The notes under the pieces are model-generated. The model worked only from the letters and a program-made list of their open reading frames with translations. It was not told where the DNA came from and did no database searches. Positions 1-12,433 of a stretch of 32,000 nt of DNA are shown one piece after another. Position 1 is the first letter of the stretch. Each line of letters starts with the position of its first letter. The position numbers and the translations under genes are program-made. Source of the DNA: Wallemia ichthyophaga EXF-994 (Eukaryota > Fungi > Basidiomycota); contig NW_008806286.1 of the NCBI RefSeq assembly GCF_000400465.1, forward strand, positions 233,865-265,864. The letters run 5' to 3'.

Positions 1-312
1 GAAGAAGTCTATAGATGCGATGATACCATGTTGATTTGTAGATTTAACTTTAGCAAGCAAGATTTCACCGATAAAAGGCCTAAAAACGAGTAAGTTGAAA
101 GTAACTTTGTAGTATACGTTGCCATTAGAGTGCTGTAGGTAGCCTTGACTAGATTGAATGATAGAATGTAAAGAAATGGATAAACCGACATCTTGTAATA
201 TTTTATTAGAATATTTAGAGTTAATGCTATCTCTAATAGCGATTGAAGGTTCTAAATTGAGATTTGAAGGGATAACAGGGATCGTGTCCTTGACTAGAGA
301 TAAGATGAACAT
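1..312 (-). CDS. RPC25: RNA polymerase III subunit C25 (RPC8), 5' part; runs off the window edge
   Basis: Manual translation from ATG at 312, open to position 1: MFILSLVKDTIPVIPSNLNLEPSIAIRDSINSKYSNKILQDVGLSISLHSIIQSSQGYLQHSNGNVYYKVTFNLLVFRPFIGEILLAKVKSTNQHGIIASIDFF. This matches the Rpc25/Rpb7-family N-terminus (MFILS..., N-K-I..VGL, V-F...VF[RK]PF-GEI). Not in the ORF track because there is no stop inside the window. Confidence 0.92.
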   Translation of the reverse strand, partial: MFILSLVKDTIPVIPSNLNLEPSIAIRDSINSKYSNKILQDVGLSISLHSIIQSSQGYLQHSNGNVYYKVTFNLLVFRPFIGEILLAKVKSTNQHGIIASIDFF

Positions 313-323
313 GGTAAGAGGAA

Positions 324-718
324 TCAAGAAGGGTTGTTTAGTAAATTGATAAAATAATTATGAAGCTCAGATTTTATTTGAGTTGGTAGAGCGTCTGTGG
401 GGCGATAAGTACTTGATATACTCTATAGCCCAAGCGAACCTTTAGCGTTTGAATGAATAAATTCAATCAAATTAAAAACATTTAAATTTGATTGGTTGGA
501 TAATTTGTCTGTAAGAATGAATAAAAGGCTTTAGAATAAATAATTAACTCACTTAGAACATCACACCTGACCTGATCATTCCATCCAAATGAGTTTAGCT
601 TGTCTTTTATAACGGATTGCAACCTGAACCACTCCCCGTTCTCGACCAATTTTCTAATTTATTGAGTAATTCGCTATAGCTAGCACAGTTGAACAAACCT
701 TTGTATATCAACATCCAT
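324..718 (-). CDS. SUS1: SAGA/TREX-2 subunit Sus1 (ENY2), 4 exons
   Basis: Exons 718-699, 653-553, 508-440 and 394-324, separated by phase-consistent GT-AG introns of 45, 44 and 45 nt. Product: MDVDIQRKLVENGEWFRLQSVIKDKLNSFGWNDQVRCDVLNKLSNQSNLNVFNLIEFIHSNAKDALPTQIKSELHNYFINLLNNPS. It carries the ENY2/Sus1 pattern LVE-G...L...L...GW-DQV...P..IK-EL. Confidence 0.88.
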
Positions 719-737
719 CACGGTGAACTGACTTGAA

Positions 738-2732
738 ATGGAATTATTGACGAATTTAGATGAAAATTATTTATTATCAGATGATTTCAATCTATCAAAG
801 TTCTTATTAACTAAGAATATAAATAAAATTGATGACTATGAGAAGGATCTAGTTGTGTTACAACATAATATCAGCATAAACACAGTAAATCAAATCTATA
901 GCAATTACAATAAATTAGTAAATAGCTCAAATATATTACAAGATGATAGAGTCTACTTGGATATCCTAAACAATCACATCAATCAGTTCAAAATTAGGTT
1001 GAAAGTGGGTCGATATCGTTGGATTTATCCTTTTAAACTTTTAACATTATCTTAGTCTAAGATACACGAAATCAAATCCAACAAGTCGGATGTCGAGATG
1101 AGTCTACAACATCGTCATTCTATAAAGATTGAAATTTCGAGATTAAATAATATTATAGACTTTACTAATTACAGCAACCACATAACCACACTCATCGACT
1201 CTGTTGATCAAGATAAACCAAAACATTTGAAAAGAATTTCACTTCAATTCAATCAATTGGTCTACTTGTTCAATAAATCATCTACCTATATTCAAAGCAA
1301 CTCAACTGAAACACTAAAGTCATCCTTATTAAACAAAATCGATCTTACTTTCATCCAACTACTGTTCAACTACGATAAATCTCTAGATAACGACTTGATT
1401 GAAATTATTAGATCATATGAGATTCTAAGCTGTCTAGATAGAGCTCAATTCACTTTCAAACAATTCTCGTATAAAGTTCTAAACTCACTCGATGATTCTC
1501 ATCTCTTTAATAACATCGTTAACTTGATCAAACAAAGAATATCCCCAATCACTAACCTATTCGAATCCTGTCACAACTCTACAAAGATACGTGAATCCTT
1601 GAATCCATCAAAAACATCCATCTCAAACTCTTCTGATGATCTCATAACTGATTATGACTTTTATGAAAACACTTTATACTCTCAAATTGAACTCATCATC
1701 TTAAACAGACTCGGATTAGACTTATTCGCTGTTGGTCGACCCAACGAATTCCAACACAACTACAAATCTTTCATTTCATTCCTTCAATCAATTGAATCTT
1801 TATCCCCTTCAATCGATTCTGTTATAAAATTGAGGCAGAACGCAAGAAAAGGTTTACTACAAAGATTTCAATTGAGTAGCTACTTTCAGCTAAGATTTAA
1901 GGAGGTAGTTGGTGTCGTTGAGGGTGCTTTTCATTCTCCACTTATTTATTGTCAACCAGGTGAAAGCTACACGATTAAACAATCTGAAAGATTAGATTGG
2001 GCTTTAAGTAGATGCTGGAATGATCAAGTCATCATTATTGATATTATTGGTAAATTTTGGAAACTCACTTTACAGTTGCTGTCGAGATATAAAGTCTGGC
2101 TAGATGATCAAATGAATCAATACTTATTACAAAAAAGCACTGAAGGCAGTGATGATGAGTTGTTCGACTTTCTAGTAAACTCTAGAGTCGATATCGATAG
2201 AATATGTGATACTATGATGAATTTATGGAACACCTTTATCAAACAAAAGATTCACTTAATAGTTCAAGATGAAATTGAAATCATGGAAGAGTCTTTAATT
2301 GAGTCAGTTGACCTAATCAAAGATGACTTTGGTCAGAGCTGTTTGAATCTGCTCACTTCAATACTCATCTCACGTTCGAGTAAACATCTAAGTGGAATAA
2401 AAGGAGTGTATAGGCTATCGTCTCCACAAAAGCAACAAGATAAGCCATCAGAATTTATCTATCTGATGATGAATGATATCAACCAATTCAATAAACTCGA
2501 TAAACTAAGTAGATACCACAATCAAATAAATCAAAGGGTGCTTAATGAATTAATGGAAAGATACGTCAACCAAATCAATGAAATTAAATCTCAGGAATCC
2601 AACTTAATGAAATACAAGCGGGGACTAGGTTCAACCAAAGATAGTAATCAAATAAATAAGCAAATAGAGCTTGATAAAGAATTTTTAAAAACTATTCTAC
2701 CACAATTTAACGTTTCAGTGGATAAATTGTAG
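738..2732 (+). CDS. COG2: Conserved oligomeric Golgi complex subunit 2-like
   Basis: ORFs 738-1055 and 1098-2732 join in frame through intron 1005-1055 (GTGGGT...TAG, 51 nt, phase 0). The N-terminus F-LSKFLL followed by a helical region, plus LFAVGRPNEFQHNYKSFISFL, FQLSSYFQLRFKE and WSRCWNDQVII...FWKLTLQLLSRYKVW, are typical of Cog2. Confidence 0.75.
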
Positions 2733-9188: not shown

Positions 9189-10061
9189 TCAATTAAAGGT
9201 CAGATCAAACGTGGAATCGTTGATGTTGTGATAGAAAGAAGGTTGAATATTTTCACCTGGATTGTTATCATTCACCAATGATAGCATACCCCATGTAGCT
9301 AGATCTTCGTTGCTAAATTCTAATGAGGGCAGTTCCTCCTCAGTAGGTCTAAGCGGACAATCTGGATGAGCTCTTGAGTGACCAGTTTGATGACATCTTG
9401 AACATTTGATGGGCTTTCTCTTTGTTTGGGATTGTTGTGATTGATGAGTCGAAGGTGATTTGCGCTTTTTAGTGGATTCGGAAGTGTATTCTGATGAATT
9501 GTTATTCAAAGAAGCAACCAAAGATTCTAAACTATCTATGGTAGATTCCTTTGAATCCTTTGAATCTGTATTTGAAATGAACTTTTTCATTATATTATGA
9601 ACGTCTTTGATTGTAATTGGTGGTAGATCACTTGATTTGAAGTAATTCACTATCTCAATCGGCTTAGATCCTTCAGACCTCATCTTTTTAACCAACAACT
9701 TCTGATTTTCATCTAATCTTCTCAAAATAGAATGATCTTTAAGATTATTTGAAGGCGTATGATTATGATCAGATTCTAAGATACTCAATTGCCATTCACT
9801 GTCTTCCCCACTTAATTCCTTTCCTCTAAGCATGAATGGACATCCAGTGCACTTGCTATTAGGTTTACGCTTTCTAGTTTCCTCAGTTAAATTTCTATTA
9901 TTCTTGAATTGTCCGCCTTTATCACATTGCAAGTAAAGTAATCCTTTACGCGATGATCTAGTGACAACTGCATATCCTTGTAGTTGAGCGTGTTCTTGTA
10001 CTCTCTTAAACAATTCTTCTTTGCTTTGAAACTTTTCTTCTGCCGGGGGTTCCAAAGGCAT
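9189..10061 (-). CDS. FAR1/MULE-type (Mutator-derived) DNA-binding protein with C-terminal zinc knuckle, no DDE domain
   Basis: 290-aa ORF. The N-terminus (F.S..EL...VQ.HA...GYAVV.RSS...LYLQCDKGG...SKCTGCPF.L.G...W.L......HNH) is the FAR1/WRKY-GCM1-like fold of MULE transposases. CSRCHQTGHSRAHPDCP is a MULE-type zinc knuckle. The region between them is too short to hold a transposase catalytic core. Confidence 0.8.
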   Translation of the reverse strand: MPLEPPAEEKFQSKEELFKRVQEHAQLQGYAVVTRSSRKGLLYLQCDKGGQFKNNRNLTEETRKRKPNSKCTGCPFMLRGKELSGEDSEWQLSILESDHNHTPSNNLKDHSILRRLDENQKLLVKKMRSEGSKPIEIVNYFKSSDLPPITIKDVHNIMKKFISNTDSKDSKESTIDSLESLVASLNNNSSEYTSESTKKRKSPSTHQSQQSQTKRKPIKCSRCHQTGHSRAHPDCPLRPTEEELPSLEFSNEDLATWGMLSLVNDNNPGENIQPSFYHNINDSTFDLTFN

Positions 10062-10117
10062 TGATGATGTTCACTGTCTAATCGAAAGATATATTATATT
10101 CATTACAATCAATAACT

Positions 10118-12433
10118 TTACATTCTAAATGGATTTATTTGAGTGTTATTTGTTTTATTACTATCATTGTTGGTATATGGGTTGCTCAAATCAAATTGCT
10201 TTTCTAATGTTGTTCCAAATGAAGACGTTGGTTGGAACTTTTTGCTGCTTAAGTTTCCTTGCCCAGTCATTTGTCCTTGTAGTCCTGTCGTCTGTGATGG
10301 TAATCCTGTACTTTGTGCTTGAATTCCTGTTGCTTGAGATTGCAGTCCTGTGGGCTGCGGCTGTAATCCAAAGTTTCCAACATCAAAATTACCAAATGAG
10401 TTAAAAGCTTGCTGTTCTTGCTGCATCTGCATTTGCTGCTGCTGTTGCTGTTGCTCTTGTTTATTGAAAGCATTGAAAGCAAGACTGTTCAATGTGGGTC
10501 CTACATTATCATTAGAAAATGAATTCACTTGTTGAGGTCTGTCCTGTAAGCCATTAGAAAATGGGTTGCGTGATCCAGTTTTTTGCGCTGTAACTGGCTT
10601 AACAGTTTGAGGTGGAGTAGGTATCTGAGATTGAAATTGCGTTCTTAATGGGTTATTGGCATTCTGTTGTCCATCTCCATACGTGTTACCAGTCTGCATA
10701 GGCATTAAAGATGCCCTAAATGGATTAAATCCTGTTGTTTGAGTTTGTAGACCTGTCTGTTGAATACCCATACCTGTCCCTTGTGGTTGGAGTTGTTGAA
10801 TGCCTGTTTGTTGTTGCTGTAAAGGTGTAAATGGTGATTGCGGTTGTGGTTGTGGTTGTAATTGTTGCTGTTGCTGTTGCTGTTGTGGTTGCATTTGAGT
10901 TTGTAATTGTTGCTGGTATGGATTCTGCACACCAAATCCAGTAAATTGTGGTTGAATGGTTTGTGGTGGCGCAAATGGTAAGAATCCTGTATTTTGTGGT
11001 TGGATAAAGGATTGTTGTGGTTGGAAGAATGATGATTGTTGTTGAATGTTTTGTGATGGCATCTGTTGTTGAGGATAAGGTTGTTGATATTCATTCATGT
11101 TACCACCATTATCACTTTCAATAGAATCTAGGAAATCTTCTGTTTAAAATTAGTAAAGGAATTAAAGAGAGTATTTTTAACATACCTGCTGCTGGAAGTG
11201 CCTTATTAGTCTGAAGTTGAGGTTGAGGTTGAGGTTGTGATTGAGATTGAGATTGTGGTGAAGGTGCTTTAGGAGGAGCTTATGTAACGCTTCAGTTTAA
11301 ACAAGTATGATTAGGTATCACTCACGTTGATAACTAGTATGACTTGCACGATTTGAACTACCAGATTCACCATCAATGACAGATTTATTATGCTTATACT
11401 CAATTCTGTTCTGCTCAAAGTTAGGATCTTCCAAATACTCCTTTAAAGCACCATACAAAGATAGAGGTGCATGCTTGATATTTGGTACCATAACATTTAG
11501 AACATTATGAAGGCGTCTAGCAATACTGAGGTACTGAACAACACTTTCGGTTTGTCTACAGAAAGTTCTGTATATAGATAAAGCTTCAGTAGCGTCAACC
11601 TTACTCATTTCAAAGTAAGATTCAAGAACGTTAATAACGCCCTCATTAAGTGCAGTGAAAAGTTGAAGAAGATCCTTTACGTTGAGTTGGAGAGCAGCAA
11701 CAGTAACGTCATCCTCAAGGTCATCGAGGAAGAATCTACAAGCAGTAATAGAATCGATTAGCTTCTGGACATGCTTGACTTCACGTAGGAGACCCTTTTC
11801 AACAGTAAGTAACCGTAATTGAGAAGGTCTGCCAGTTGGATCAAAGGAAGATCGTGGACGTCGGCTGTTAGCGGAAGAGCCCCTTGTCTCAGATTGAACT
11901 TTAATAACGTCGTGTTTAAGATCACGATAAGCTTTTATGCGTAAATCCAAGTAAGTTGCATAAGCTTGGATGTTCTGCGGAGTAGTACGACCATCCCAGT
12001 CAATGGAAGCGACTCTACGTAACTTGAGGTGATCGTGATGAGAGAGAAGGTCTAAGATGTTATCAGTATCGCCATTTCTGAATAGAGAGTGGGCAATAAC
12101 GAGGGATTTGAAAACGATCTGGGGTGTTGGTGAGTGTGAGGGTGATGTACACAGAAACTGAGTTACTAACGATAGAATTTGGTTCACGGAGTCTATCCGA
12201 GAGGGCGCGTAGGATATCCGATAGAGTAGCTTGATCTGTGAAGGAAGCAGAAATGATTGGTTCAAGTACCTTTGAATGTAACTTAGATTAAATCACTAGT
12301 AAATAACGCTCTCCCACTTTAGATTTTGGTAAATGATTCTGATAGTAAAAAAGTGAATAACTCGCTATTAAATTATTAGTTTCCTTACCTTTGGCTTTGT
12401 TGCTGCTTTAACGAGCTTGTTGGCAGAGGACAT
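10118..12433 (-). CDS. YAP1801: ANTH-domain clathrin adaptor (AP180/CALM, Yap1801/Yap1802-like), multi-exon
   Basis: ATG at 12433 gives MSSANKLVKAATKPK. Further motifs: LSDRLREPNSI|VFKSLVIAHSLFRNG, IQAYATYLDLRIKAYRDLKHD and LFTALNEGVINVLESYFEMSKVDATEALSIYRTFCRQTE. The C-terminus is Q-rich with repeated QxTG and several NPF motifs, ending INPFRM*. Confidence 0.93.
10415..10925 (-). repeat. CAG/CAA-rich polyglutamine and QxTG low-complexity tracts within the AP180 CDS
   Basis: tgctgctgctgttgctgttg-type runs on the + strand at about 10430-10455 and 10860-10890 translate to poly-Q on the - strand. Confidence 0.85.

Follow-up and report, generated by a model that had tools for sequence, protein, structure and literature searches.

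We examined a 32,000-nucleotide (nt) stretch of the genome of Wallemia ichthyophaga EXF-994 (contig NW_008806286.1, positions 233,865 to 265,864; this whole stretch is called the window below). At its start, SUS1 and RPC25, the gene for the RNA polymerase III (Pol III) stalk subunit C25/RPC8, stand in tandem on the minus strand and are separated by 11 nt, and a COG2-like gene is read divergently from SUS1 on the plus strand. In this compacted genome, the locus is a real and conserved instance of transcription units that overlap, and we consider it rather likely that genome compaction has produced overlapping, nested units here and not an operon-like translational unit. The spacer between the SUS1 stop codon and the RPC25 start codon measures −1 to 32 nt among the lineages compared, and an RNA-derived contig from a relative (L012) is continuous over the SUS1/RPC25 junction, the junction between RPC25 and the next gene, and a convergent gene pair. 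A sequence-only reading of this DNA had argued that 11 nt is too small for a 3′ untranslated region (UTR) with its poly(A) site plus a promoter and a 5′ UTR, and that logic is upheld. It had then offered two explanations, namely, a dicistronic mRNA whose translation relies on leaky scanning or reinitiation, or an RPC25 promoter inside SUS1 combined with a SUS1 3′ UTR that runs into RPC25. The second is favored and the first disfavored by the data presented here because AUGs are not depleted within SUS1, no termination upstream ribosome-binding site (TURBS) or significant RNA structure was found at the junction, the spacer is variable, an AUG-free stretch precedes RPC25, and SUS1 intron 3 is conserved.

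Reading of the minus strand, together with splicing by script, gave a SUS1/ENY2 gene of four exons and three introns encoding 86 amino acids (aa). Exon 1 (positions 699 to 718, with the ATG at 718-716) is followed by intron 1 (654 to 698, 45 nt), exon 2 (553 to 653), intron 2 (509 to 552, 44 nt), exon 3 (440 to 508), intron 3 (395 to 439, 45 nt), and exon 4 (324 to 394, including the TGA at 326-324), all on the minus strand. Each intron has GT..AG ends. Intron 1 lies 40 to 84 nt upstream of the COG2 ATG on the opposite strand, intron 3 lies 83 to 127 nt upstream of the RPC25 ATG, and intron 2, in the middle, is weakly conserved. The junction of exons 3 and 4 was predicted by script, and the homologous junction is spliced in L012. 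Exon 2 corresponds to the ENGEWF...FGWND core of the EnY2 domain as defined by Pfam, and residues 4 to 75 of the predicted Sus1 match EnY2 (PF10163) with an E value of 4e-15 and a score of 56.3 bits (cut-off, 27).

The spacer TTCCTCTTACC (313 to 323, minus strand) connects the SUS1 stop codon to the RPC25 start codon (312-310), and the distance from the T of the TGA to the A of the ATG is 14 nt. The first 104 codons of RPC25 (1 to 312, minus strand) are present before the gene exits the window at its start. The product begins MFILSLVKDT, the annotated W. mellicola RPC25 protein begins at the same MFIL, and the window sequence matches SHS2_Rpb7-N (PF03876; E=1e-8). The window edge leaves only this N-terminal domain readable; the orthologue on contig L005 from a relative carries SHS2_Rpb7-N and RNA_pol_Rbc25 (E=5.5e-29), and the W. 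mellicola proteins likewise carry both domains. A Sus1-Rpc25 fusion produced by stop-codon read-through was rejected because the two open reading frames (ORFs) lie in different frames. The COG2-like gene (738 to 2732, plus strand) has its ATG at 738, an intron near 1040-1097, and a second ORF at 1098-2732. Its product matches Pfam COG2_C (E=1e-41), and the N terminus of the W. mellicola orthologue P0127, MEIINNLNQEYLL, resembles that of the window, MELLTNLDENYLL. The start codons of SUS1 and COG2 are separated by 19 nt (719 to 737). SUS1, at about 395 to 400 bp with its three introns, therefore occupies the entire interval between the start codons of COG2 and RPC25. This interval would normally serve COG2 and RPC25 as a shared promoter region. 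Strand reading, splicing, and Pfam matches thus confirmed the gene identities, coordinates, 11-nt spacer, and change of frame given in the sequence-only reading.

The gene order, with COG2 and SUS1 divergent and RPC25 downstream of SUS1, is kept in every Wallemia relative retrieved. More than 15 independent assemblies from Wallemia relatives show this order, with 32 nt or −1 nt between stop and start, and it is thus neither an assembly accident nor a one-off. The SUS1 stop and the RPC25 ATG are 11 nt apart in the window, where the SUS1 and COG2 ATGs are 19 nt apart; the corresponding distances in L005 (Logan SRR25399871) are 32 nt and about 18 nt. W. mellicola and its close relatives were represented by four assemblies from NCBI, two contigs from ENA, and about twelve from Logan. 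In this group, the spacer is −1 nt, with the last A of the SUS1 stop doubling as the A of the RPC25 ATG (TAATG), and the start codons of SUS1 and COG2 share 2 nt within a CCATGG, found in W. mellicola at positions 8275-8278 of contig L006. Because the SUS1 and COG2 starts abut or overlap, the leader and promoter of each gene lie inside the other, or the mRNAs are almost leaderless. The coding DNA of COG2 must hold the SUS1 promoter and leader.

When SUS1 was modeled separately at each locus, the three intron positions were identical in the three lineages and the products were 84 to 86 aa long. The EnY2 scores of the orthologues were 51.1 bits in L005 and 65.6 bits in W. mellicola, against the same cut-off of 27. 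Between the window and L005, SUS1 has a synonymous divergence (dS) of about 0.9 and a ratio of nonsynonymous to synonymous divergence (dN/dS) of about 0.19. SUS1 is therefore under purifying selection and the arrangement is old, having persisted among Wallemia lineages that are close to saturation at synonymous sites. SUS1 was not found upstream of RPC25 at the non-Wallemia loci L001-L003, L004, L026, and P0002, as judged from gene tables and, for L001-L004, also by tblastn. As far as this small outgroup sample goes, the SUS1-RPC25 pairing looks specific to Wallemia. Neither RPC25 alignment nor a degenerate DNA pattern for HSNGNVYYK..FN found further relatives among JGI metagenome contigs. A check of adjacency and spacer length in related genomes, as proposed in the sequence-only reading, thus found adjacency conserved within Wallemia and absent at the few loci from outside it, with spacer lengths that vary among −1, 11, and 32 nt.

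These data also bear on the idea that SUS1 is mis-modeled or a decaying remnant and that the interval is simply a bidirectional promoter of COG2 and RPC25, to which we give almost no credence. SUS1 is unannotated in all W. mellicola records examined (GCA_004918525, GCA_004918155, GCA_004917935, and GCA_000263375), and the exact spliced Sus1 proteins of four lineages, as well as C-terminal fragments, had no match in a collection of 15 billion proteins, which speaks for this idea. However, the 397-nt "intergenic" gap between RPC25 and COG2 (L006 7878-8277; L016 1104-1500) is a complete four-exon gene. Its frame is intact, its three introns occupy conserved positions in three lineages, every lineage scores 51 to 66 bits against EnY2, the substitution pattern given above is that of a constrained gene, and intron 3 is spliced in the RNA of L012.

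The wider order at the loci of COG2 orthologues is also recognizable: an FGGY kinase gene, then GNAT-like, RPC25, and SUS1 genes in the opposite orientation, and then COG2 and SNF5 in the first orientation. The dynamin ORF of the window is 77% identical to W. mellicola Dnm1, 85% identical to a Logan contig, and about 60% or less identical to other basidiomycete sequences over the full length, and its COG2 is 53% identical to that of W. mellicola and 75% identical to that of the Logan relative. The Pfam matches in the window (AFT, DUF1720, fimbrin, Rio2, an Itc1-like protein, and dynamin) are those of a fungus, and together with these identities they place the window in the Wallemiomycetes but outside the W. 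sebi/mellicola group. Two differences in introns were noted among the relatives. RPC25 of L005 has an intron after codon 8 (L005 8301-8348, minus strand; GTTAGTG...AAATTAAAG) that the window and W. mellicola lack, so that closely related lineages differ by the gain or loss of an intron. In W. mellicola, intron 2 of SUS1 (L006 8055-8103) was modeled as ending in an AAG acceptor (..TATCAAG before AT), with a canonical TACTAAC branch site upstream; at this acceptor the sister species carries an ordinary CAG (L011 2281-2324), and the AAG of W. mellicola is a model prediction.

RNA evidence across the junction is provided by L012 (Logan SRR23314750, 3321 nt), an RNA-derived contig that contains RPC25 of a W. 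mellicola-group species. Four introns that are present in the genomic contig L011 are missing from it: intron 3 of SUS1, two in the GNAT-like gene, and, on the opposite strand, one in the gene for the FGGY kinase. The contig joins CAAAGTTTAG directly to ATAAAGTACC at the SUS1 splice junction and then passes through TAATG into RPC25 and further. It is unbroken over SUS1 exon 3, RPC25, the next gene, and the antisense FGGY kinase gene, with introns spliced in three genes and on both strands. The model of SUS1 intron 3 is thereby borne out by spliced RNA of a W. mellicola-group relative, and in this relative RNA covers the SUS1/RPC25 junction without a gap. Because the contig is continuous over neighboring genes, even convergent ones, adjacent transcripts overlap at the locus. 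L012 is a short-read assembly and merges convergent genes, so that it represents an assembly of overlapping transcripts and no proof of a single molecule; it is compatible with a dicistronic mRNA or with two overlapping mRNAs. Since its RNA crosses the junction, a structurally dicistronic SUS1-RPC25 RNA probably exists, whereas it looks unlikely that Rpc25 is made mainly from such an RNA. All other contigs screened for splicing (ten W. mellicola contigs and L009, L010, L011, L013, L014, and L025) were genomic. Positions 1-3275 of L012 unite the transcripts of four genes, including a convergent pair with a gap of 58 nt, and the 3′ ends of that pair therefore overlap as RNA in this fungus.

Two features of the DNA, both from small samples, hint that RPC25 transcripts start inside SUS1. 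The genomic stretch upstream of the RPC25 ATG is free of AUGs for 166, 155, and 120 nt in the window, L005, and W. mellicola, respectively. In the same order, AUG-free stretches of 145, 98, and 124 nt extend from the SUS1 ATG into COG2, and stretches of 146, 265, and 161 nt extend from the COG2 ATG into SUS1. Only 5 to 8% of the ATG-to-ATG gaps in the window reach the length of its three stretches (145 to 166 nt). The AUG-free stretches match the expectation for three separate leaders embedded in neighboring genes and provide a hint of such leaders. The second feature is the conservation of the SUS1 introns between W. mellicola and its sister species (L011): intron 1 is 91.5% identical and intron 3 is 91.8% identical, and intron 2 is 72% identical with indels. 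For the same pair of species, identity is 79 to 84% in three other local introns, 78 to 84% in two spacers, and 94% in the RPC25 coding sequence (CDS). Introns 1 and 3 jointly show 8 differences where about 17 were expected (binomial P=0.007). The two conserved introns adjoin the start codons of COG2 and RPC25, respectively, and intron 3 lies inside the AUG-free stretch of RPC25. SUS1 intron 3 is thus a candidate for the RPC25 core promoter or transcript start, and intron 1 is a candidate for COG2 promoter or leader DNA.

Under the favored reading of nested units, most RPC25 mRNA would have its own start within the body of SUS1, no farther than roughly 120 to 165 nt from the RPC25 ATG (in exon 3, intron 3, or exon 4), and ribosomes would reach this ATG by ordinary cap-dependent scanning of a leader that lacks AUGs. 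SUS1 transcripts would extend into RPC25, because it is impossible for them to end before the RPC25 start, and would probably reach the RPC25 poly(A) site, because an internal site would truncate the RPC25 mRNA too. The locus would thus produce a longer RNA, dicistronic in structure but serving mainly for Sus1, and a shorter RPC25 mRNA nested with it. Transcription of SUS1 across the RPC25 start region may also damp RPC25 through transcriptional interference. In Agaricomycetes, genes on read-through transcripts are also independently transcribed, and the downstream gene may suffer interference from read-through (PMC4503453). The pairing of a SAGA/TREX-2 gene with a Pol III gene is most likely an accident of compaction and not a functional coupling.

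Several points weigh against this reading. The internal RPC25 start is one that we infer and is not directly observed. A comparison of intron 3 between W. mellicola and its sister species revealed no TATA-like element that is conserved. The AUG-free stretches are individually only 5 to 15% events and come from three lineages that are not independent, and the intron comparison is a small test, resting on those 8 differences against about 17. Furthermore, the short first ORF (ORF1), the gap of −1 to 32 nt, and the contexts at position −3 resemble those of true bicistronic green-algal loci (PMC11291117), and the UAAUG of W. mellicola is a classic stop-restart pentanucleotide. The TATA-like element that had been considered in intron 3 was rejected as unconserved, since AATATATC in W. 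mellicola is AATCTATC in the sister species.

One alternative is that the mRNA is obligately dicistronic, a single capped transcript with both ORFs, and that Rpc25 is made either by ribosomes that terminate at the SUS1 stop and reinitiate in a coupled manner or by ribosomes that miss the SUS1 AUG through leaky scanning, possibly aided in the latter case by reinitiation after tiny out-of-frame ORFs within SUS1. We judge this explanation unlikely. It accommodates the distance of −1 to 32 nt between stop and start in all lineages and the continuous junction RNA with SUS1 intron 3 spliced. The upstream ORF, at 84 to 86 codons (255 to 261 nt), is close to the algal ORF1 medians of 291 to 357 nt, and the inter-ORF distances of −1, 11, or 32 nt are comparable to those in Auxenochlorella, where the median is 40 nt and some stops and starts overlap (PMC11291117); short first ORFs followed by short gaps, as in the algal bicistronic loci, are thus found here as well. 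The sequence context of the start codons may also favor leaky scanning. At −3, the SUS1 ATG is preceded by G, G, or T, never A, and it has G at +4, although its context is constrained by the abutting COG2 start as well, and the RPC25 ATG has A, T, and A at −3, that is, A in two of three lineages; these contexts were compared without a Wallemia consensus.

Analysis of the AUGs within SUS1 gave a less favorable picture for leaky scanning. The spliced SUS1 mRNA contains 5, 8, 7, and 6 AUGs in four lineages, at or above the shuffle means of 4.2 to 5.4, so that AUGs are not depleted and SUS1 is not the AUG-poor upstream ORF that leaky scanning calls for. In an algal reporter, restoring a single AUG in ORF1 was enough to drop the output of the second ORF (ORF2) to background (PMC11291117). 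On the other side, the internal AUGs of SUS1 in the window are all out of frame and open ORFs of just 2 to 20 codons, all of which terminate 109 nt or more upstream of the RPC25 AUG.

Reinitiation was considered in the same way. In yeast, upstream ORFs that permit reinitiation usually have fewer than 10 codons, compared with the 84 to 86 codons of SUS1, and coupled stop-restart after long ORFs involves overlapping or nearby codons, typically 14 nt or less apart, together with a UGGGA motif (PMC5972666). W. mellicola (UAAUG) and the window (11 nt) stay within about 14 nt, but L005 (32 nt) exceeds this limit. A UGGGA (TGGGA) motif 1 of the TURBS type, which is complementary to helix 26 of 18S rRNA and is flanked by a stem, was absent from the whole spliced SUS1 mRNA, and so from the sequence upstream of the stop, in three lineages, and RNA folding at the junction was no better than that of shuffled sequences (z=−1.1). 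UAAUG coupling is, however, employed by a fungal virus in its fungal host (PMC2699510). A restart frequency of a few percent would seem a poor supply of Rpc25, a core Pol III subunit. We regard as quite unlikely the specific form in which a conserved cellular bicistronic mRNA would allow ribosomes to restart, after the Sus1 ORF of 84 to 86 codons, at the adjacent or overlapping RPC25 AUG without a TURBS and so couple the synthesis of both subunits in a fixed ratio.

A further alternative is that there are two short mRNAs with minimal overlap, in which SUS1 would be polyadenylated about 100 to 200 nt into the RPC25 coding region, at AAUAAA/UAUAAA-like motifs in the SINxKYSNK codons, and RPC25 would escape because the site is near its own start. 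In each of the three lineages, AATAAA, TATAAA, or ATTAAA follows the SUS1 stop at a distance of 86 to 173 nt, the SUS1 mRNA would stay small, and the overlap of neighboring transcripts that this model shares with the nested one is backed by L012. Such motifs are nevertheless expected by chance in AT-rich coding DNA and are here dictated by a conserved peptide, and a functional poly(A) site in RPC25 should truncate the RPC25 mRNA too. To our knowledge, suppression of promoter-proximal poly(A) sites is undocumented for these fungi. We consider this explanation fairly unlikely, and nested units remain the reading that we prefer.

The locus can be compared with several known systems. In the compacted genomes of microsporidia and nucleomorphs, as here, intergenic DNA is too short for separate UTRs and promoters, transcripts extend into or start within a neighboring gene, and regulatory DNA lies in coding sequence. 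For Encephalitozoon, overlapping transcripts are discussed in one report (PMC3629993). Wallemia differs from these organisms in being free-living, with a genome of 9.6 to 9.8 Mb and normal intron density (PMC3849046), and the squeezed SUS1 keeps three introns. Among basidiomycetes, polycistronic transcripts have been described, as the sequence-only reading correctly stated (PMC4503453). In the Agaricomycetes studied by Gordon et al. in 2015 (PMC4503453), same-strand neighbors likewise share one RNA, and the independent transcription and possible interference mentioned above agree with the favored model. That study differs in that read-through was shown by long reads, ORFs of at least 100 aa were required, and conservation fell outside Agaricomycetes (PMC4503453). 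Its main text mentions no SUS1-RPC25 pair and does not show Wallemiomycetes to have read-through transcripts. Our literature search turned up no mention of SUS1 paired with RPC25 and none of polycistronic Wallemia RNAs.

The nuclear loci of green algae that are exclusively bicistronic and rely on leaky scanning (PMC7896298, PMC11291117) share with SUS1-RPC25 a short ORF1, a tiny or overlapping gap, conserved pairing, and an ORF1 that is often unannotated. Their inter-ORF medians are 40 to 183 nt, compared with −1, 11, and 32 nt here (PMC11291117). They are sensitive to upstream AUGs, whereas SUS1-RPC25 carries 5 to 8 of them, and they have been established by single long-read transcripts and by proteomic and reporter proof of translation, whereas the Wallemia locus is known from sequence and one short-read contig. 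The termination-reinitiation sites of caliciviruses, influenza B segment 7, and the hypovirus CHV1 (UAAUG/AUGA; PMC5972666, PMC2699510) resemble the UAAUG that follows a long ORF in W. mellicola; in the window, by comparison, the restart codon would be 11 nt downstream of the stop. SUS1-RPC25 differs from the viral sites in having no UGGGA motif 1, no significant structure, and unconserved spacing of up to 32 nt, and SUS1 and RPC25 are cellular genes with a plausible independent promoter.

If the units are nested as we favor, a free-living fungus with normal introns accommodates, within about 400 bp, a whole gene along with promoters and leaders for three genes, and regulatory DNA sits in the introns and coding sequence of neighboring genes. 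For annotation, the consequence is a SUS1 missed in every W. mellicola record examined, and for expression data it is that short-read counts at such loci blend the transcripts of different genes. The locus also bears on how gene order may become frozen once neighbors share essential DNA. If instead the minority reading of coupled translation held, fungi would offer a rare cellular example of stop-restart translation following a long ORF. The small size of the locus and its natural spacer variants (−1, 11, and 32 nt) make it a convenient test case.

The spacing of other genes places the junction in context. Wallemia genomes of 9.6 to 9.8 Mb are 68 to 74% CDS and have about 2.4 introns per gene (PMC3849046). 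The other same-strand spacers between stop and ATG that could be defined in the window measure 56, about 192, and 317 nt, and the 11-nt spacer is the extreme of an already compact distribution. At the loci of the relatives, RPC25 is separated from the next gene by 71 to 82 nt, and the convergent gap is 58 nt. A second tight tandem pair occurs at 10059-10120 of the window (minus strand), where the stop of an ANTH/DUF1720 (AP180-like) gene (10118) and the ATG of an AFT/FAR1-domain gene (10061) are 56 nt apart; the same spacer in L005 (18459-18509, minus strand) is 49 nt. In L026, which derives from an unrelated eukaryote with a compact genome, the RPC25 ATG lies 40 nt from a divergent RNase PH gene (2661-2702), and thus next to a different neighbor.

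Two W. mellicola gene models resemble fusions of neighboring genes (L006 10406-13478 and 13604-16598). The first is an SNF5 model of 992 aa, whose counterpart in the window consists of an SNF5 ORF of 647 aa and a separate ORF of 226 aa, and the other is an 817-aa model with bZIP_2 and CH (fimbrin) domains. Gene predictors may have been misled by short spacers in these cases. Finally, the G+C content is 0.32 over the first 2 kb and climbs steadily along the window (1-32000), reaching 0.50 over the last 2 kb.

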